Notes under the pieces: generated by a model
What the model was told of the DNA's origin: nothing
Seen by the model: only the letters and a program-made list of their open reading frames with translations
Database searches by the model: none
Translations under genes and position numbers: made by a program
Shown: in pieces, positions 15,277 to 45,322 of the stretch
Layout: each line of letters opens with the position of its first letter
How positions within the stretch are numbered: position 1 is the stretch's first letter
Source: Intoshia linei
Lineage: Eukaryota; Animalia; Orthonectida
Direction of reading: 5' to 3'
NCBI GenBank assembly: GCA_001642005.1
Contig: LWCA01000168.1
Location: 1 to 45,322 of the forward strand
DNA length: 45,322 nt

Positions 15277-16493
15277 CGACCATTTGAATTGTGCTTAAAA
15301 AAATGAGGATAAATTTCGCAAGTTCCAATATTTTTAGAAGATAAATCGACCAGTTGTCCATCTTCAAATTTAGTGGAATCAGAAACTTTGATATGACTTT
15401 GTAAAATATCGTTATTTTTACAACACACAACCTTTCCATTTGAATCCATAGATAACATTGGATTTTCTTGTCCCATCTATTTAATGGAAAATAAAATTTA
15501 AAAACGACACCAAACCTTTACAACAATAGTTCCACTATCAAAACCCATACAAATTTCATTAATATTTTTCCTACCAGCAATAGTCCAAATACGATCCATA
15601 CCATAATTTAAAGTCTTTTCCATTCTATAAGTTCTAGAGTTCCAAAGTTTAACTGTTCCGTCTTCTGACCCAGTAATGATTACTGGCAGTTCACTGTGAA
15701 AATAAACAGCAGAAATATTTTGAACGTGTCCCGAAATTGTGTGAACGCATGATTTGTTGTGATAATCCCAAATTTTAGCAGTAAAATCATCTGAACCAGA
15801 AATAATGTAAGGTTTATCTGGTCCATGATAATACGAAATTGTATTCACACCACGAGTGTGACCTTCCAAACTAAAATTTGGATTTCGGCTACCCAGATGC
15901 CAGACTTTAATGGTTTTGTCTAAGGAAGCTGACGCAAATGTATTATTATCTTTAGGATTAAACAATATTTGCATTATGTAATGAGAGTGTTTTTCAAAGG
16001 ATTGTATACATTCCCATGATTTATCCCAATTCCATAATTTTATAGTTTGATCATCACTACAAGTCAATAATAATGGCTGAGATGCATGGACATCCATTGA
16101 ACGAATATAATCACTATGGGCTTCAAATTCTTTAATCTTTTCCAAATTTATATAATTGTACACCCGTATCATTAAATCGTCGGATCCTGTTATAACCCAG
16201 TTTTTTCGAGGTACAAATTTTACTGCTCTAATTGGAACAGTACAAATTTCTAATGTTTTTGTCATTGACTAAAATTGATAAATATTTAATTGATACATTT
16301 ACAAGTTAAACCTGAGATTCATAGTTCCAAAAATGAACGTTTCCATTGTAGAGACTTGCTACTATCCAAGGTTCAGTAGAATGAATATCTATGCATTTTA
16401 CTCGATCCGACCTTGCTGTTAATTTTCTTTTTACGTCGAAAAGTGACTACATTTTTAGTTATTTTTATTTCAAATTGTATGCAATATTACCAT
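15277..16493 (-). CDS. COPB2: Coatomer subunit beta' (beta'-COP), N-terminal WD40 exons; C-terminal part not found in the window
   Basis: Exons 16493-16491 (ATG), 16446-16312 ([19 protein letters not shown]), 16268-15516 ([23 protein letters not shown]..), 15476-15277 ([24 protein letters not shown]). Confidence 0.95.
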
Positions 16494-17522: not shown

Positions 17523-18981
17523 ATGAAGTCCAATCACTCAAAAGAAGTGAAAAGTTTTAGAAAACGTGCCATGAATATACCTACCGTGGAGAATAGAAAG
17601 GAAGAAATTAAAAAACCAAAATTTGAGTTTAGTGGTAAAACTTGCATAACTTTTCATAGAAGTTGAACTTAACCTTCAACATGTTTAATTTGTTGGATTT
17701 TGAATATGAATATTTCTTTGTTTACTACTTATTTAAATTATCTAACTCTGGTCATAATTCATTGACGAAAGAATACTCAAAAAATATTTTAATTTAGTTG
17801 GGTTTGGTTTTAAATTTCTTTGACGTGAATATTTCTATTGACCTCAAAATTAAAATGATGGAAACGTTTTTGATAATGCCATTAAAAATTAAAAATGTAC
17901 TAAAATTACAATATTAAGCGTACATCCGTATAATTATTGTACATTTTTTAAATAAATTTTTTAGTTACCTCAAAGTCTTTAACAACAGACTCCACATCTT
18001 CGTACAAATTTTCAGTATTAGCTAAATGTGTTCGGCACATGAAAGTAAATTATATACGTAAATTAATTAAAAAAATTTAAATTATAGAAACGACATTTGA
18101 CAAATATGACAACACCTCTTGGAATAGATGAAATAATGAACGAAATTAATATTACAAATACCAGTGCAATATTACGGAGGTGGCTAGTTAATGAGGTATT
18201 TCTTTTATAGAATTGGTTTAATAATTTTTTATTTTTAGGCCTTTATTTCTAATGAAAGAATAAAAATTGTTGACGGGAAATATGCCTACCAACCACCATT
18301 TGATATAAAGGATGCAAAGACAACTCTTAAACTTTTGCGACATTATTGGTTGAAAATGAAAGGAGGTGTACCCATAAAATTAATCGAAGAATCTTTACCA
18401 AACTATGAAAAAGTTATTCAAGTAATATTTTTTAAATCCGATTTAATTTTGCGTAAAACCCCATACTCGATTAGAGAAATTAAAGTTTTTATTCTAAATA
18501 TATATTCTGGGTGCCAGTACATTCGTTGATTGGTAAGAAAGAGTTGGCTATTTCATTAACCTCTAAATTGCTGCATTTTAAGTTTTAGAGAATTCAAGAT
18601 CACATTGTCACCGTTAACACAACGACTACTAAAAAGCCGGTTGTTTTTTTCAAAGACACTAGAGACCAGCTCAAAATTAATGACGGTAAAATGCAAAACA
18701 ATTCCATAGAATATAATAATCTTAGAGATTAAAAACTTGTGGAAAACTGTAAAATTGGACGGAATGGATGATATAAAGATTAGTGACTACATTACCTCTC
18801 ACCATCTAGGTCAACCATCTCAAATTATTAGAAAGGTATTTACAAAATTAAATTGTATTTAATATTTTCAAAGGTTGCACCAAAACAAAAAAAACAACAA
18901 AATAAACCACTCAAATCGAATAACGAACACTTGACAAACAAACTTCTCAGTATGAGTGAAATGACTCAAAATAAAAATTAA
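17523..18981 (+). CDS. GTF2E2: General transcription factor IIE subunit beta
   Basis: Seven exons splice to FRKRAMNIPTVE..YKFSVLAKCVRHMK|KRH..PLGIDEI..WLVNE|AFISNERI..GKYAYQP..GGV..IEESLP..NLWKTV..NNEHL*, following TFIIE-beta motifs. Confidence 0.9.
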
Positions 18982-19052
18982 TTTATTCCATTAACAATTA
19001 CTTTATATAAAATACAAACTACTTACAACTATTTTTACAAATTTTCAATTTT

Positions 19053-22000
19053 TCATTCAACGTGTGAACTTGTTTCAGATATAAAAGTTTTGGGATTTTT
19101 TAAAGTTACGATTTTTTGGTTTGATTTGTTAATGTGAATAACTTTAATATTTTTACCGCTGTGGTTAAATTTACGTGGTGTCGAAGGGTCAATAATTTCA
19201 ACTTTAAGTGGAATATTTTTTTTGGATACATATTTATGCAAGCTTTTATCGTTTTCTTCATAAGAACTAACAATAACTTCATTGACGGGAACATCAAATT
19301 TGACGTCTTCGTAATTGTTATTTACTCGAGATTGATCAGAAAATACTTGCGAATTTTCCAATTCGAAATTACCACAATCGACGGGAGGCATAATACTTTG
19401 AATTGCTTGAGTCAATTGTCTGTGTTGTTGGTAATTATCAAAAGTAAAGATTTTTTTTTCTTCAGATTTTCTAGTTTTATATTTGCTTCGCTTTTTTGTG
19501 GCGGGCCACATGATTGAATTTGGCCAGTTTTTGTCACCTTTTTTTGTTCGAGATATCGCTATGTTTGATAAAATGTTGTTTTGATCGTCATAGTGGCTAT
19601 TTAAACTATCTACATTTCTGGGGTCTTCTACTGGAGGTGGTGTCATGTTTCTTACATGTATTCCATTGAAGCAAGGTTCTTCGTCGTATTTACAGAAATT
19701 AACGGTTTCTTGAATTGAAGCATCCGTTAAACTGTCCTGATTGAGAGGAAATAAAAGTTTTGATTTGAATTTGTGCATTATCATTTCAGAGTCCAAATCA
19801 TTTTCCCATACTGATAACAATGTTTGTGATAAAATTCTGTATGTAAATGGAGTACCAACAGTTTCTTTCCAGTGTCTAGCTTTTTGAAATGCTAGTTGGT
19901 CCACCAAAGATGTTAATTGGTCGTCTAATGGGTGAATTACGTTTGAAGCAGAGAGAGGTATATTTACAATGTGTACTCGTTGTTCATTTGCTACTTGCAT
20001 CATTTGAAAAGAAATATCTTGAATACTTTGTGACATAAAAAGTAGACATGGATTTGAATATGAAGCGTTTGTTTTACGTACAAAATGGTCTCTAAACCAC
20101 CAGAGAAGAGTTTCAGATGTTACCATTCCATCTCTAGTGCAAACAAAATATGCATCGGGGTAAGTTTGACGGGCGGCAGCAAATTTGACACTGTTTCCTC
20201 TCACTATGATAAAAGGAGGTAAATGTGAACCATCCGCAGCTATAGCCCAAATCATTCGAATTTCATTGAATCCAGAAACTTTGAAATCATTCATGGCAAA
20301 TATGCGACTAGGTTTAACGTTGTAAGAATGTTTTTGATAGAGATGATTAACCAAAGAAAAAAATTCGTTAAACATAACTTTCTGTTCGAAAAAAGAAGGT
20401 TGAGATTCTCTATTGATTGTCTTTTTAATTTCAACAGCTAAACAAAAAAAATTATAAATAATTTTCAGTTAACGGAATAATTGGTCCTGAAAAAAATCTT
20501 ATTTCGTTATTGAGGAATTTTTTTGAAAAAACATTCTTGTTAACGTAATTTTTCATAATCGAAACATTACTGTACATTAAAACAGTGGTTCCGATTGGGT
20601 CCAAAATTATATGTCTGGGCCGTGAGATTCAAATAAAATATAAGAAAATTTGAATCAACTTTTTTTTGTATATGAGAATTTTACTATTTATTAGTTTCTA
20701 GAATTTGATCATCCCAAAGCTTATCGACCGCAACATTATTATTTTAAAAATCCCACTTTCATCCCACCATTATTAATATTTAATAAAAAATTTTACAGAA
20801 GCTTGTGAAAAAAATCTAATTTTACCAACCTATAAATATAATTGAAAATATCCTCTTTTTCCAATATTTTGAAATGGGACCCTTACACGATTTGAACCGG
20901 AAACCATTGCATTAAAACAATGAAAAAACGAAAATATTTTGATTTTTATTCCACTTAACCTATATTTGCAGGTAATTTCATTTCATATAACTAATAATCA
21001 ACCATTATCATCATTAACCAAAAAGAAAATAAAATGTTTTACGTATATATAACTTTTAATTTGAACCGAAAAAGGTTTAGTATAATTATGATTCTAGTCA
21101 TTCTAAGTTAAAATTTAATGGAATTTTTGTAGTTTAGAAAAATTCAGCCCGTTAATCAGGAATTTTTTCTGTTAACCATAGGAATTATCAGGTATAATAA
21201 TGCAAAACTAGATATTATTGATAAAAATAAAAATAAAAAACCAATTAAATTAAATTAACATTATTATCGGGATCTTTACTCATTCTCGATAATAAGTTTT
21301 TAAAAAATCGACAGTACAAAATTTCAGATAAAATGAAAATTTAAGGTCCACAAAAATAACAAAATTAAACGTGTTTGTTTAATTTTCTATAAATAATAAT
21401 ACGTAACTTAAAATACAAATAAATAACCAGTATTTACCTTAGACAGATAAAAAACTAAATAAAAATCGTAACCCACCATAACCTAAACAAGGCTGAACTA
21501 AAGCAAGGACCACGGCACGAATCTTTGGAGCCGTCTAATAAAAAGATTAAAAATATTTATTTATTAATTTTTTTCAAAATATTCAGTCCATACATATCAT
21601 AATGTAAATGACGAACACATTATAAAAATGTTAAGCTAAAACGTTCTTTAAAAAGTTAAATAATATTGCAGGTGCGTTCTGTAAAATTACCCAAATGTTA
21701 ATATGCTTGGACCATTTTAACTCACACTCTGTTAAAAAATTTACAAACCAATTTTTCTGGGAATCATAATAAAATAAAAAATACTAGGGTGTCTTTTAAG
21801 AAATCCAGCCAGCCAGTTTTGACCTGGAATACCGCCACTATACGGATTTTGATGTCCACGATACAACATCAACATTTCTGCAGCTCGTTCACGAACTTGC
21901 CAGTTTGAAATATTGAAACCACATCGCTGAATGTCCTATTTAAGAATATAAATAACTAAATGATATGGAATTATACGGCAATGTAATTTTTAAGTTCATC

Positions 22001-22884
22001 TTCTTCTTCAGGTGATAAAATTGTTTTAACCCCAGGTTTGACTCCATGTTGAACTCGTCCTTGCACTCTATCCTTTAAACTACTATAAGGCACACCAAAT
22101 TTCTTGGCTGATCCACGTAACGTGTAATTTTCTTCTTCGACTGCTTTCATTGCTGCAATCATATCATCGTTTTTCCATTGAAGTCTAAGTAATTAATTTT
22201 AATTATTAAAATTACAAAAAATAACAGTTTCATATCCTAATTTCTTATAAAAATGCAAAAGTACCGATGAGCAAATTGTCGTTTTTTAGAGGCTCTTTTA
22301 GGTTTTTTATCTAATTCAATATTTTCCATAACAATTATATCAGATTCATTAACATCTACAATATTATTGGGTGAAATTTTATCGTTGTCATAAACATCAT
22401 TGGGTGAAATTTCAATATCATTAATAGAATCGTAGCTTTCAATATAATAACTATCCCCCTTAACCTCTTCAATTGCACCAATAACATCATCAACATTTTG
22501 CTCATATTCACCTGTATGAATTTCAATTTCACTTTGTGCATTATTGGCTACGGAATTATCCATATAAGAATTTTCAATGTCCATATTAGAAGAATCGATC
22601 TTGACATCTAAATTACTATCAGGGTCCGTAGAGATAACTTGTTCATTGTTTGATATAATGTAACGATCTTGAACAATCTCAGTTTCTAAAATGTGGCCAT
22701 TCATATCTGTACTAGTAATATCTTCATATTGAATGCTATGGGACATGTCATTTAACAAAGTTTCTTGAACGTTACTCATATAATTATTAGCAATTATTTC
22801 CATTCCTATATTATCGCTCATTTGAGATTCCTCCACAATTTCTTCATTATTTGATATTATACTCCAATCAATAGGACTTGACAT
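19053..22884 (-). CDS. Spliced pogo-transposase-derived protein (acidic N-terminus + HTH_psq + CENP-B-type HTH + degenerate DDE_1); probable domesticated gene
   Basis: Exons 22884-22265, 22184-21977, 21935-~21786, 20437-19053 join in frame. QWKNDDMIAAMKAV..SAKKFGVPYSSLKDRV (psq), LSPEEEDEL..PGQNWLAGFLKRHP (CENP-B HTH), AADGSHLPPFII..DGMVTSETLLWW..HPLD (DDE_1-like). No stops or frameshifts; no flanking TIRs seen. Confidence 0.85.
20455..21192. mobile_element. Tigger-related MITE in intron 3 of the transposase-derived gene
   Basis: 20890-21190 aligns with 36775-37110; its right end resembles the reverse complement of the Tigger left end at ~43865. Confidence 0.75.
20583..20909. mobile_element. 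hAT-type MITE nested in the Tigger-related MITE
   Basis: Ends cagtggttcc.. / ..ggaaaccattg, with 8-bp TSD cattaaaa at 20575-20582 and 20910-20917. Confidence 0.75.
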
Positions 22885-24200: not shown

Positions 24201-27200
24201 TTAAACAAACATTTTGTAAACAAAAAGGGTGCTTTTAATGTTTTTTCGACATACAGGACATTCTTTAAAATTTATGGCACAAAGAGAACAACTAACATAA
24301 TGCCCACAATTATTAAAAACGACTTCAATATTTTTTTCACAACAAAACAGGCACAGTTCATTTTTCTTGATATCAAATTTTTTCATTTTTTCCTTTAAAA
24401 TATTTATTTTTTTATGTTTTTTTTCAATTAAGTATCTTGTTTTTAGATTTTTTTTTGTAGTGTAGCTAGATTTATCTGGCACTGAAATTTGTAAAACATA
24501 ATGATTGCCAATTTTGATAATTTGAGAATTATTAATATTGGTTGAATCATTCGAATGTATTGATACATCTGAAGATGTACTATCTGTTTCAATATCTTGC
24601 AGAGATGACGTTAAATCATTACATGTATTTTTATCATACAAGTATCTAGTTCGTGCTCTAGCTACTTGAGATTCAGTTTTATTAATGTCAAAAGTGTATT
24701 CATATTTTTCTTTATAATTTTCATACTTGTAAAATTTTTCTACTGCGCTAAATGACGCAATCGTCCTTAAACCTAATTTTAATGATTTTATTTTACGGGA
24801 TAGTGCACTTCGTCCCGGTAATATACAATTTTTTATTTCTATTGTTATGTGAGAACTTTGATAGAAACAGTGGTATTCTGTTATAGTTTTATAGGTTAAG
24901 TTAAGTATAAATCGATTCTTTGCGATTAAGTTGAAAAAATGTTTTTCGTTGTTCACTTTTATTCCAATTTTCAAATTTTTGCCACATATTGATATGGATT
25001 TCAATTGTCCGAGTTGAATTTTCCTAAAAATTTATTAAATATTAAATTGAATATTTAATAGGTATTTATTTTAATGTTTTAAACGTTTTACGAGCCCAGG
25101 AACCACAAACCATCCATCTGATACTGTTTGAAAATATTATAAACTGTGTATGATAATTTAAAACAGCTGACAGAGTCAATATTTTCCACAGGCGACGTGA
25201 GTTTTAAGAATTCAAAAATGTACTATCGTGTGAAGTAGAGCCATTAAAAAGGTACGCGTAATCGAATCAGAATCGTAACCAGAACCGGTAACCTGTTGGG
25301 TACGAACGGATATTTTTTTAAATATTGATGGACTAGGATAAGCGGGCCAAGGTAAAAACAGAAATTTTTTTATTTACTTGTATAAAATTTATTTGTATCG
25401 AACTGATTGTGCGTCGTTACTGTCTATGCGTAACGGTGATTGAATTAAAATTCAGATAAAATAGTGTCCATGATATACTAATCAGTGATTATAATCGGAT
25501 TAAATTTTTACGGTGGGTACGGGCGGTTATTGAAAAGTGACCCTATAATTCAATGAACCAAGCCTTGAACCCTAACACAATGATGTATACTAAGAATCAC
25601 CAAATGGTGACATGTAAATTCTATAACCGGGTAGATAACTTATATATTCACTCCACGTTTAACGACACAAAAAGATGTGGAACCGTGCTTTAAACCTCAA
25701 ATGACACCAAATATTAAAATAAAATGGTAAAACTTACACAGTCGACCAACTTGAATGTTTCAATTTAAAGACTAAATATGTTGGTTGAACGCAAATAATC
25801 ATGTCCGTATATAAAAAATTTTTCTTAGCAGACCAAGGAATTTTAAAAAGTTTGGCAATTTTCGCATTAATAATTGTTTTATAATCAAATATTAATTGCC
25901 CATATTCTGAGACATGCGAAATCAATTCGCACAGGTATATAGACAACTCATTTAAATTCAAACTACTAATGATTCCTTTGAAATTTTCCAACGAACCATC
26001 TAGATTAAAATATTGTTCTATAGTTTCCGAAGATGTGTTGTTTAAGTCTGTAAAAGTGGACACTGGATACAAATCTTCTGTTGGGATTAGAGTGCTACTA
26101 GATTGAATACCTTGAGTCCCAATTTGATACATATTATTGCGATGTGAATGATTTTTATTTTGGTTCACAAATATTACATTTGATCGTGTGTTGATATTAT
26201 TCAAAGTTATTGAAGATAAATTATGACTACTGTCATTCAGTTCGTTCAATCTTTTTAACATCATTTTTATTTTTCTCCATTCATCACCATTCAATAGTAT
26301 TGTTTCAGCGAATTCTCCGTTTGTATACTTGTTCAGTAGGCATTGTAGAAATATTTTTCTAAAATTTCAAAATAAATTTTAAAAAAATCACGTTATTTTA
26401 GGTCCGTCATTCGGTCCAGTCTTCTATTTCAAAAAAAATCTAATAATTTAAGTCAAGATGTCTCAATTGTGTCCGAGATATTAGTCGAATATTATATATT
26501 TTAAACACATACATTAAATCTAATCATACTTATTGTTATGTGAAAATATCAACTTTTAGTAACTTTAGTATTTTTTTAAAGTTTTAACTTTGAAGGTGCT
26601 AGATTTTCAGTATGAAATTTATTTTAATATTTGCACCGGAAAAAACTGAGTTAGAATTTTTAGTTTTCAATTTTCTGGGATTGTCAGTTTTCTCAATGGT
26701 TACACAGATATACACACACACATTTTGAGCAATAATTAATTCATATAAGGATGCAAAAAATCTTAATTACATATATGATTATAATTATAATTAGCCTATC
26801 GTATTTATATTTTGCAACGCACATTAAAATACAATTTTTATTCAAAAATTGAAATTTAGTAAACGTAAATTTAAATAACAAATTACCATTTTAGGAATTA
26901 AAATAAATTTCAAATTTATAATAATGAAGTTATATTTCAGTTTACAAAATCGCAAAAAATTTGTAATTTATAAACTTTATACTAAATTTAAGTAATATCG
27001 AAGAAACGGTATATAAAAAATGTAGAAATGAATTTATGAAACTGAAACACAGATTTTTGTATTTCAAATATAGAAGTTCAGTTTAATTTTTTTTTGTAAT
27101 TGTAGGATAAATATTTAAATTGACTGTCAATTCAAAAATTTGAAAAATATTAGTTGATAATACATTGTATATTAAAAATAATTTTTTATCTAGATCAATT

Positions 27201-36554: not shown

Positions 36555-37111
36555 CAGGCTAATTCCTCGTTGACGGAATAAATGAATTTGAAAAAAAATC
36601 TCATTCTCTTAAAATGAGGATTTTTTTTGGAAAAATATTCTCGTTAATGGAATTTTTTATAAATAATGTATACATTAAACATAAGATAAAAAACTTTTAA
36701 TTTTTTTTCGATGATTTATATTCCATGTTTGCCTTGGGGTCCAAAAAAATAAATATTTTGAAATGAAACACTATTGAACCGGGAACCAATGCATTAAAAC
36801 AATTAAAAAATGGAAATATTTTTATTTTCATTCCATTTAACCTATACTGGCAGGTTATTTCATTTCACATAATAAATAATCAAGCATTATTATCATCATT
36901 AATCGAGAAAATAAAATATTTTACGTATCTAAAGCTTTTAATTTGACCCGAAAAAGTTTTAGTATAATTATGATGCTAGTCATTTTAAGTTAAATGTATA
37001 TATAAATATTTAATATATTTAATGGAATTTTTCTACTTTAGAAATATTAAGTCCGTTAATCAGGAATTTTTTACCGTTAACGATAATTTCCGTTAAATAG
37101 GAATGAGCCAG
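36555..37111. mobile_element. Tigger/pogo-type MITE with TA target sites
   Basis: ta|caggctaattcctcgttgacggaa ... ttccgttaaataggaatgagccag|ta; the TIR matches the terminus at ~43865. Confidence 0.82.
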
Positions 37112-43864: not shown

Positions 43865-45322
43865 AAGGCTAATTCCTCGTTAACGGAAAAAAATTCCTGA
43901 TTAACAGACTGTGAATTTTTCTCAAGTACCAAAATTCCGTTAAATTTTAATTTAAAATTATATCATCATAATTTTTAAAAATATCAGACTACTCGACGGA
44001 AACAGTTTTCATAAATCTCAATTTATTATTAATTCAACTTATATATTGTTAATGGTATTATGTGGTTATAAAATATAATACATAAAATATTTTGGATTAT
44101 AAATAATTAAACCGGGAAATGAATACTTTGATTCTGATTAATATTAATTACATTAAACTTTGTAATCCTATTTACCTTAATCCTGTTAGTTAGACATCAA
44201 TCAGACACCGATTATTCTTGTTTCATTATTATTAATTTAACATAAACAATTCATTTAATTTGATTTTAAACAATACACTGACAATAATAAAAATCAAAAT
44301 TAGAAAATCATTTTCTCTACAACAAAAAAAACAAATTTTGGATAATATCAAAATATACCAACAAAAATTTGTCTATAAAAAGTAGTCTTGCATCGTTAAC
44401 TGTTTCAGATATTAAAAAAAACGAAAAAAAGATTCTTAAACAATTTAATAAAAACACAATTATTGGAAATAAAAATAACAGTAAACGCATTATTAGCTTA
44501 GATAATGTAAAATTTGATACAGTTCTGATCAGTAAATTATTTTATTTCAGTGAGTGGATACGTAATAAAAAAACAAGCAAAACAACAAGATTTTAAAAAA
44601 AAAATGAATAGCGAAGATTGTGGTGGATTAAAAAAGTTCAAAACCAGTGATGGATGGCTAAGATCAATCAAACGTAGGTATGATATATCCTATAAAACGT
44701 TGTCTGGTACCAAAGCATCATTTAGTCAAAATGATTTCTTTCATAATTTCAAAGATAAATTAATTGAGTATGAAACATAAAGGACATTTTTAATGCCGAT
44801 GAAACTGCACTATATTATAAAAAATTGCCTACGAAAAGTTACATCTTTAGTGCACAGGAATCTACTAAAAAGATTAAAGATAATAAAAATATAACAATAA
44901 TATTATTTAACTGTACTGCTCTTGGTGAAAAAATCAAACCGTTATTCATTGGAAAAAGTGTCAAACCACAGTGTTTCAAGGGATTAAATATGAATGAACA
45001 ACCTTCCTATTATGAAAGTAATTCAAAAGCATGGATGAAAAGTCGAATATTTCAAGATTATATAAATAATTTAAATAATTTATTTTACAAAACTAATAGA
45101 AAGGTTCTTATTTTGATAGACAAGGCTACATGCCATTCTGAAATGAAACTATCTAATGTTGAGACAATGTTTTTACCTGCCAATACTACATCCTTGTTAC
45201 AACCATGTGATCAAGGTGTAATCTGATCGTTTAAGTGTATTTATACACAGATATATATTAGAAATTTAATTAACAAAGAAAACCTTAAAATCAAAAATAT
45301 GAGAGGAATCACTATTCTTGAC
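43865..45322 (+). mobile_element. Decayed Tigger/pogo transposon (left TIR plus frameshifted transposase ~44290 to window end) in a KIF17 intron
   Basis: TIR ggctaattcctcgttaacggaa. RKSFSLQQKKQIL, FKTSDGWLRSIKRRY, DIFNADETALYYK, SNSKAWM, LILIDKATCH, LQPCDQGVI*; split over several frames with stops. Confidence 0.92.

Follow-up and report, generated by a model that had tools for sequence, protein, structure and literature searches.

A3Q56_01979 of Intoshia linei is very likely a member of an old, unnamed family of pogo-derived host genes also seen in annelids

On the minus strand of a 45,322-nucleotide stretch of the Intoshia linei genome (contig LWCA01000168.1, hereafter the window), positions 22884..19053 hold a four-exon gene for a protein that resembles a pogo transposase with a damaged active site. 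Is this a host gene or a leftover transposon copy and, if a host gene, was it captured by the orthonectid lineage itself or inherited from an earlier ancestor? The first-pass annotation had read the locus as a host-recruited pogo transposase and, possibly, an independent lineage-specific event. The former reading was borne out by Pfam domains, predicted fold, single copy, splicing, and absence of TIRs; the latter was not. We conclude that the gene is very probably the Intoshia orthologue of an old, unnamed family of pogo-derived host genes that predates the split between orthonectids and two or more annelid groups (alvinellid polychaetes and leeches).

The four-exon gene is identical to the GenBank gene A3Q56_01979 of I. 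linei. Its coding exons add up to 2364 nt and give 787 codons uninterrupted by a stop, and the spliced translation is the same as the database protein P0001 at every residue; the frame is intact, as the first reading had it. Exon 1 (22265..22884, minus strand as for all features of the gene) begins with the ATG at 22884, codes for about 190 acidic residues followed by a basic patch and FAH, and ends in phase 2 (CG/GT). Intron 1 (22185..22264; 80 nt, GT..AG, phase 2) separates it from exon 2 (21977..22184), which carries a psq-type HTH and the beginning of a second HTH. After intron 2 (21936..21976; 41 nt, phase 0), exon 3 (21785..21935) encodes the CENP-B/Tc5-type HTH, ending in FLKRHP and in phase 1, and beyond intron 3 (20438..21784; 1347 nt, phase 1) exon 4 (19053..20437) contributes a linker helix, an RNase H-like DDE_1 domain, the C-terminal tail, and the TGA stop (19055-19053). 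The description of these introns as tiny and host-type fits introns 1 and 2, the latter matching in size the introns of a neighboring gene (40 and 38 nt), but not intron 3, which has been enlarged by a dispersed repeat (20468..21187, no strand assigned). That repeat has more than 40 genomic copies at 74-88% identity, and at other sites in the genome the distance between its two blocks is greater by about 400 bp.

The predicted splicing and expression were confirmed at each of the three junctions. The joints 20437/21785, 21934/21976, and 22184/22265 are all present in contigs of three public runs from one 2024 study, and these contigs span every exon. The library type is absent from the record of these runs and the intron-less form was taken as RNA; because the contigs lack introns, we regard them as RNA-derived and the gene as transcribed and spliced.

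Pfam was scanned exon by exon (four exon ORF pieces, matches listed at E <= 1). Exon 4 matched DDE_1 (PF03184) at 1.7e-11 over profile positions 7-122 of 177, scoring 44.5 bits where the cut-off is 22, and exon 2 matched HTH_psq at 1.1e-5 (25.5 bits, above cut-off). HTH_Tnp_Tc5 on exon 3 alone was below cut-off (0.0075, 16.7 bits); a precomputed match to PF03221 is present on the whole P0001 record. A bipartite HTH region (HTH_psq with HTH_Tnp_Tc5) therefore stands N-terminal to DDE_1, and these matches support the view that the DNA-binding helices are well kept. The full-length model of P0001 scores pLDDT >90 over residues 205-580, and residues 212-247 and 265-324 form two bundles of helices in it (pLDDT ~90). 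Residues 372-577 (19686..20303) are predicted to adopt an RNase H-like (DDE) fold (AlphaFold2 pLDDT 89.6), and the best PDB matches of this core model were the transposase cores of SETMAR, Mos1, and Sleeping Beauty and retroviral integrase cores.

The regions flanking this folded part are of a different character. Exon 1 matched no Pfam family at E <= 1; its acidic stretch, a putative activation domain in the first reading, is N/S/I-rich with 23% D+E, a net charge of -40, and predicted disorder. The basic patch KKPKRASKKR (22279..22308, residues 193-202) lies directly before the conserved FAHRLQW junction and might serve as an NLS or as an arm that contacts DNA. The tail is mostly disordered, its only predicted structure being a helix at residues 657-675 and a terminal helix at 775-786. 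It holds two short motifs: SLNSH (19593..19607, residues 604-608), which corresponds in Intoshia to the family motif GLSLLSALSSHEYAS and whose L605 and S607 do not vary in the alignment, and QLTQAIQSI (19392..19418, residues 667-675), within the first of these helices, which follows the family pattern Q-[IL]-x-x-A-[IV]-x-S-I (QINRAIDSI).

At the catalytic site, the motifs AMNDFK, LFMSQS, and HPLD were found where first reported, as was the basic patch. Two of the three residues of the DDD triad are replaced. The first aspartate position, canonically N-x-D-E-[TS]-G, is N376 (codon 20289..20291), with S, N, T, A, or I in relatives, and behind it 24 residues are missing from all family members whose sequences span the region. 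The second, canonically LL-x-D-x-H-x-S-H, is S462 (codon 20031..20033), with S, G, or N in relatives and D in one, P0010; the site is degenerate as proposed, although the residue that occupies it is S462 and not M461. Only the third aspartate is retained, D498 of HPLD (codon 19923..19925), 36 residues past the second position. Both the degenerate residues and the shortened linker of the first reading are thus upheld. From the sequence and the model, we infer that the Intoshia protein is catalytically dead. The retention of D498 and of the active-site fold, together with the aspartate at the second position in P0010, means that some residual or altered activity is possible.

A dead transposase in an open frame might be nothing more than a lone decaying or non-autonomous pogo copy, open and transcribed by chance, and pogo-type copies are numerous in this genome, with at least 152 other DDE_1 matches, often broken by stops. 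We consider this highly improbable, in the first place for reasons that lie in the locus itself. The frame stays open for 787 codons over four exons. A search over 9 kb revealed no credible TIRs, the inverted repeats there being AT-rich, low-complexity matches with 71-90% complementarity. The only protein-level match in the 41.6-Mb assembly is the gene itself, in agreement with the earlier claim of a single-copy, TIR-less gene; it is also the source of the only HTH_psq match in that assembly. The conservation of intron positions and of short C-terminal motifs beyond the transposase domains, and dN/dS values well under 1 in relatives (all given below), argue in the same direction. Other transposases in the window had been described as broken, which holds for the one remnant checked (44885-45322, with an in-frame TGA).

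We found relatives of the protein with an exhaustive HMMER search of 1.84 billion representatives, at 33-41% identity; for so fast-evolving a protein, word-indexed searching was almost blind and gave two hits. About 20 relatives form a clade with 100/100 support (branch 0.77) apart from the 42 ordinary pogo proteins in the tree. The Intoshia protein sits inside this clade on a terminal branch of 1.12. The named members are HELRODRAFT_183146 of Helobdella robusta, itself in the tree, and LSH36_139g04026 of Paralvinella palmiformis, assigned to the clade via its 90% cluster. The annotation of both goes no further than hypothetical, HTH CENPB-type domain-containing protein, and none of the literature searched contained a paper naming these or the Intoshia locus tag. 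Most other members come from ENA or Logan contigs (for example ERZ25767047, ERZ24900295, ERZ27262661/72, GCA_013332715.1, and several SRR runs).

What these proteins share goes well beyond a transposase fold. The substitutions at the first two aspartates and the 24-residue deletion are common to all members covering these positions, save for the aspartate of P0010. Exon 2 is the best-conserved part, with 62-69% identity to single-exon fragments of relatives, and the Intoshia protein carries the family motifs FA[HY]RLQW, WWFRDHF, and Q..AI.SI. Each of introns 1-3 has a counterpart of identical position and phase at loci L012/L013 and L019 in two other genomes, and a third genome (L014) has such a counterpart of intron 1. 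Full-length relatives have an acidic N-terminus of 150-200 residues, followed by a basic patch (KKRPKPRP, KPRKRD, or KQVKKRE in place of KKPKRASKKR) and the FA[HY]RLQW junction. The fusion to an acidic N-terminal exon, noted in the first reading, is therefore no novelty of Intoshia. Homology of the exon 1 sequence itself to their N-termini was not demonstrable (best local match VGAIEEV, E = 0.43), and it is the architecture alone that is shared.

These shared features also bear on when the gene was domesticated. A capture within the Intoshia lineage, with introns and an acidic exon gained and catalysis lost there, would account for a single-copy, spliced, dead-site gene, and a genome full of pogo-type remnants offers a possible source. 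Such an orthonectid-specific domestication is nonetheless highly unlikely, since the substitutions, the deletion, the motifs, the architecture of the N-terminus, and the positions and phases of the three introns recur in relatives that include annelids, and since Intoshia is nested in their 100/100 clade. The resident remnants lack the psq HTH, and four sampled DDE_1 loci showed no BLASTP similarity to the Intoshia protein. All four of these loci retain the long linker and the LLxDN..H motif of the second aspartate, and the three that reach the first motif retain DET. We also considered that the annelid sequences might be orthonectid contamination, which fits poorly with their GC content, with the length of their introns, and with contigs of megabase size. 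The dead site, deletion, motifs, and introns shared with relatives therefore indicate that the domestication is not specific to Intoshia, and with them the proposal of an independent event, which two named annelids speak against, falls away.

A dN/dS far below 1, one of the checks suggested at the outset, was found in two pairs of relatives, the comparison being made between relatives because divergence from Intoshia is saturated and a second orthonectid sequence was not found. By the NG86 method, the Paralvinella-type pair (alvinellid annelids) gave 0.006 for the core and 0.09 for the tail, and the P0160/P0161 pair gave 0.033 and 0.10, respectively; over the whole aligned length the two pairs had values of 0.06 and 0.08. 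The dead core is under very strong purifying selection in these relatives. Within Intoshia, four SNPs were seen, two of them synonymous in the folded part and two of them conservative changes in the tail.

An inherited gene might also be confused with one that arrived by horizontal transfer or contamination, whether the source was an annelid or some other animal. In favor of this stands the finding that all the named organisms with the family, Intoshia aside, are annelids, whereas I. linei lives in a host outside that phylum. This explanation is extremely improbable. The locus has a GC content of about 25-32%, the same composition as the window; introns of 41 and 80 nt resemble those of its neighbor; the repeat in intron 3 belongs to the same assembly; and the terminal branch is very long, as is typical of orthonectid genes. 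The gene also sits mid-contig with other genes on either side. Its neighbors are a RING gene and one that may code for TFIIE-beta; the latter had been called GTF2E2, and its TFIIE-beta winged-helix match is weak and sub-threshold (E = 0.15). The neighbors of the relatives are RIB43A, archease or WW, and eEF1A, and synteny with their loci was not seen, which is weak evidence at such divergence and in a rearranged genome.

It could also be that an orthologue of a named gene (CENP-B, JRK/JRKL, TIGD2-7, POGK, or POGZ) was missed by annotation. General architecture and catalytic-site decay are similar to those described by Gao et al. (PMC7386202), and TIGD6-like and POGK-like clusters scored 0.92 in the Atlas feature search. 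Transposon-like clusters outscored these, however, and none of the named proteins looked up from the closest hits was one of these genes. The first HTH is psq-type, and CENP-B_N, BrkDBD, KRAB, and zinc-finger matches were absent at E <= 1 from the four exon ORF pieces and from the precomputed Pfam hits on P0001. A PDB sequence search with the protein returned nothing relevant and no match to CENP-B. The named genes have, moreover, been reported as vertebrate or mammalian domestications (PMC7386202). We therefore regard such an orthology as very unlikely and retain membership of the unnamed family as our reading of the gene.

The Intoshia protein is most likely a DNA-binding nuclear factor, judging from its domains and modeled structure. 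A protein of this family would no longer cut or move DNA. Its two HTH domains may bind specific DNA sequences in the nucleus, with the inactive RNase H-like domain serving as a structural or oligomerization module, and the disordered acidic N-terminus and the two C-terminal motifs (SSHEY-like and Q..AI.SI) would then recruit partners. On the model of CENP-B, JRK, and POGZ-type proteins, its role may be transcriptional or chromatin-related.

With a dead site, core dN/dS values of 0.006-0.03, and conserved introns and short motifs, this spiralian family looks like a true old host gene, and its members are candidate DNA-binding regulators for study in tractable annelids (Platynereis, Capitella, Helobdella). 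Until now, reports of pogo domestication in spiralians have described species-specific expansions (PMC10027918). The debated position of Orthonectida within Annelida, so far argued from sequence phylogenies and mitochondrial rare events (PMC12249979), could also be approached through the distribution of the family, as an independent character from the nuclear genome. We put forward only tentatively, as a possible but rather doubtful proposal, that the family is confined to Annelida and Orthonectida and that a single ancient pogo capture is a nuclear rare genomic change. If so, it would place orthonectids within or next to annelids, with the dead site, the 24-residue deletion, and the three introns as its markers, and the fact that the gene has persisted in an animal genome that ranks among the smallest would point to an essential lineage-specific DNA-binding regulator. 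Its retention in the small Intoshia assembly itself hints at an indispensable role.

Compared with its closest named relatives, HELRODRAFT_183146 and LSH36_139g04026, the Intoshia protein belongs to the same clade and has the same dead-site substitutions, deletion, and C-terminal motifs at 33-38% identity. It shares its N-terminal architecture with LSH36_139g04026, while the HELRODRAFT_183146 record begins inside the second HTH. Its tail is shorter than in the two annelid proteins and far more AT-biased (N/I/K-rich), and their SSHEY motif is reduced to SLNSH.

Pipsqueak, E93/Mblk-1, and LCOR are psq-HTH transcription factors without a transposase domain. The psq-type HTH is common to them and the Intoshia protein, and in them it is the DNA-binding module of a nuclear regulator. 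They lack the second Tc5-type HTH and DDE_1, and no specific similarity to them was detected. Active pogo transposases (psq and Tc5 HTH with DDE_1) have the same domain order and fold as the Intoshia protein and share with it a third motif of QPLD type as well as PPF and WF..F. Unlike the Intoshia gene, animal elements such as P0163 and P0164 keep N-x-D-E-T-G, LL-x-D-x-H-x-S-H, and the long linker, and these two have 12 member sequences each where the Intoshia gene is single-copy.

Twelve pogo-derived genes are known from vertebrates, among them CENP-B, JRK/JRKL, TIGD2-7, POGK, and POGZ, with the catalytic triad decayed partly or wholly in several and Ka/Ks of 0.06-0.2 (Gao et al., 2020; PMC7386202); CENP-B-like captures have also been cited for fission yeast. 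The Intoshia gene resembles the vertebrate genes as a whole-transposase capture that retains HTH domains and DDE_1, and in being TIR-less and single-copy with triad decay; the low Ka/Ks of the vertebrate genes has its parallel in the two pairs of relatives (0.06 and 0.08). It differs in its psq-type first HTH, theirs being CENP-B_N or BrkDBD, and in having no KRAB, zinc-finger, or CENP-B dimerization domain. The family to which we assign it is seen in an orthonectid and in annelids, stands as a clade of its own within the set of proteins sampled, and has hallmarks of its own in the deletion past the first aspartate and in the WWFRDHF, SSHEY, and Q..AI.SI motifs.

The window (25% GC, a eukaryotic contig) corresponds to contig C2208 of the Intoshia linei assembly (41.6 Mb in 3520 contigs), and our protein search matched the locus to the Intoshia linei 'hypothetical protein A3Q56_01979' (P0001, 787 aa). 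Its four exons lie on the minus strand at 22884-22265 (E1), 22184-21977 (E2), 21935-21785 (E3), and 20437-19053 (E4), separated by GT..AG introns of 80 nt (intron 1, 22185-22264, phase 2), 41 nt (intron 2, 21936-21976, phase 0), and 1347 nt (intron 3, 20438-21784, phase 1). The joined frame of 2364 nt has no internal stops, and its translation is identical to P0001. Domain and similarity searches were run per exon, while whole-protein steps used the P0001 record. Of the words sampled from the locus, 56% (approximately its exonic share) were present in three runs from one 2024 study. Contigs from these runs cover E1-E4 and omit precisely the three introns; because this intron-less form is accompanied by canonical minus-strand splice ends, the contigs derive from RNA. 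The spliced, uninterrupted four-exon protein described in the first-pass annotation is therefore borne out, including the three junctions for which it proposed an RNA-seq check. Four single-base differences from the genome were common to all three runs, which bear two different organism codes. They lie at window 19239, 19335, 19857, and 22115, comprising two synonymous changes in the folded part (codons 230 and 520) and two conservative changes in the tail (D694E and L726F), and they fit strain polymorphism rather than editing.

The same contigs run unbroken into the gene from a convergent plus-strand neighbor (18600-18990), either because the 3' ends overlap or because the assembler merged them. 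Both GT..AG introns of this neighbor (18685-18724, 40 nt; 18832-18869, 38 nt) are also spliced out, indicating that such short introns (about 40 nt) are usual in this host. A TFIIE-beta winged-helix match to the neighbor was sub-threshold (E = 0.15, 18335-18529). A 267-aa ORF on the gene's own strand lies upstream of it (24201-25004) and ends in a C3HC4 RING finger (PF13920, 1.4e-11). Another minus-strand ORF, of 255 aa at 15498-16265, has an obvious WD40-repeat sequence with, possibly, a coatomer-like N-terminus. A dispersed repeat (20468-21187) sits in intron 3; the assembly contains over 40 copies of it, 74-88% identical, among them one at window 36752-37085. The intron-3 copy consists of two blocks (20468-20791 and 20863-21186) that are spaced about 400 bp wider in other copies, so it looks internally deleted.

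Pfam matched HTH_psq on E2, HTH_Tnp_Tc5 on E3 (weakly), and DDE_1 on E4, and no Pfam family on E1. The AlphaFold2 model of the E4 core, built with a 45-sequence alignment (pLDDT 89.6, pTM 0.85), has a predicted RNase H-like fold whose closest PDB structures are the SETMAR/Metnase, Mos1, and Sleeping Beauty transposase cores and retroviral integrase cores. In the full-length model, for which Mos1 transposase complexes were the closest whole-chain structures, residues 1-190 are disordered, residues 205-580 are folded, and the tail is disordered outside two helices, one spanning 657-675 and a short one at the very end (775-786). Residues 1-190 are 23% D+E with a net charge of -40 and are followed by KKPKRASKKR.

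We aligned the active site with those of 12 ordinary pogo-type proteins, which carry N-x-D-E-[TS]-G (11 of 12) and both LL-x-D-x-H-x-S-H and a [QL]P-x-D third motif (all 12). The first two catalytic aspartates (D1 and D2) are replaced in Intoshia by N376 and S462, and the third (D3) is retained as D498; the stretch from D1 to the following core strand is shorter by 24 residues. Judged by sequence, the proposed loss of catalysis was right, and the motifs had been located correctly, except that the D2 equivalent is the serine rather than the methionine.

A transposon copy would be another reading of this locus, and four results speak against it. No terminal inverted repeats were found in a 9-kb search, the sole match in a whole-genome protein-level search was the gene itself (settling the proposed copy-number check), and HTH_psq matched nowhere else in the genome. 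DDE_1, in turn, has at least 152 further (pogo/Tigger-type) matches in the assembly, many with in-frame stops and some with open frames reaching about 300 aa. Four sampled remnants all kept the long linker and LLxDN..H, the three covering the first motif had DET, and none showed BLASTP similarity to the gene. One DDE_1 remnant, at 44885-45322 on the plus strand, has a single in-frame TGA and is truncated by the contig end. A domesticated pogo transposase, as first suggested, is the reading we retain.

An exhaustive HMMER search returned 14 proteins with E < 1e-30; most of these, together with further searches, gave relatives 33-41% identical to the Intoshia protein (P0003, P0004, P0006, P0007, P0010, P0012-P0015, P0030, P0157-P0162, and P0170/P0186), and single-exon fragments reached 62-69% over E2. 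An IQ-TREE phylogeny built from 259 columns of the DDE core in 59 proteins recovered the family as a 100/100 clade (branch 0.77) separate from 42 ordinary pogo proteins; the Intoshia protein falls within this clade, on a long terminal branch (1.12). Members spanning the region share the 24-residue deletion. Among those covering each position, D1 is S, N, T, A, or I and D2 is S, G, or N, with P0010 the sole member keeping Asp at D2. WWFRDHF is common to members covering that region, and all but a few have an SSHEY-type motif (SLNSH in Intoshia) and Q-[IL]-x-x-A-[IV]-x-S-I (QLTQAIQSI in Intoshia). In P0004 (loci L014/L015) the third Asp is gone too (QPIS); its gene is without introns 2 and 3, and an additional intron interrupts the psq HTH.

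Exon boundaries at relatives' loci L012/L013 and L019 match Intoshia in alignment position and phase: intron 1 after FA[HY] within an Arg codon (phase 2; donor CG|GTACTT identical in Intoshia and L012), intron 2 after YI[AKR] (phase 0), and intron 3 after KRHP (phase 1). Of these three introns, L014 has just the first. The P0003 gene (L016/L017), on a gene-dense contig of 33% GC, is a single 787-codon ORF at L016, with no introns across the tblastn-matched region (residues 152-555, Paralvinella query). NG86 estimates of dN/dS for two pairs of relatives were 0.006 (core) and 0.094 (tail), and 0.033 (core) and 0.10 (tail); with dS of about 1.0-1.3 these are approximate, yet clearly far below 1. 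The shared deletion, D1/D2 changes, and intron positions of this clade overturn the suggested lineage-specific origin. Nor is the acidic exon a new fusion, as full-length relatives likewise begin with 150-200 acidic residues, after which come a basic patch and FA[HY]RLQW.

Organism names are attached to only two members, Helobdella robusta HELRODRAFT_183146 and Paralvinella palmiformis LSH36_139g04026; the others sit on ENA or Logan contigs, some megabase-sized. L021 (ERZ27262661) and L023 (ERZ27262672) are two ENA assembly-analysis contigs with neighboring accessions; one of them bears a family member with 99% identity to the Paralvinella palmiformis protein, the other a member of the P0160-P0162 group, which suggests host-animal DNA in such samples as a source of unlabelled relatives.

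The product is most likely a nuclear factor that would bind DNA through both of its HTH domains, with the inactive RNase H-like domain as a putative scaffold. Partner binding may fall to the acidic, disordered N-terminus and to the pair of short motifs near the C-terminus. Our literature search found no paper naming this gene or its annelid relatives. Mitochondrial rare events were used in a 2025 paper to argue that Orthonectida lie within Annelida (PMC12249979), and the gene could add a nuclear character for this placement, but only if the family turns out to be absent outside annelids. Among known systems, domesticated pogo genes were mined by Gao et al. in vertebrates only (PMC7386202), and a metazoan survey described only species-specific expansions for lophotrochozoans (PMC10027918).
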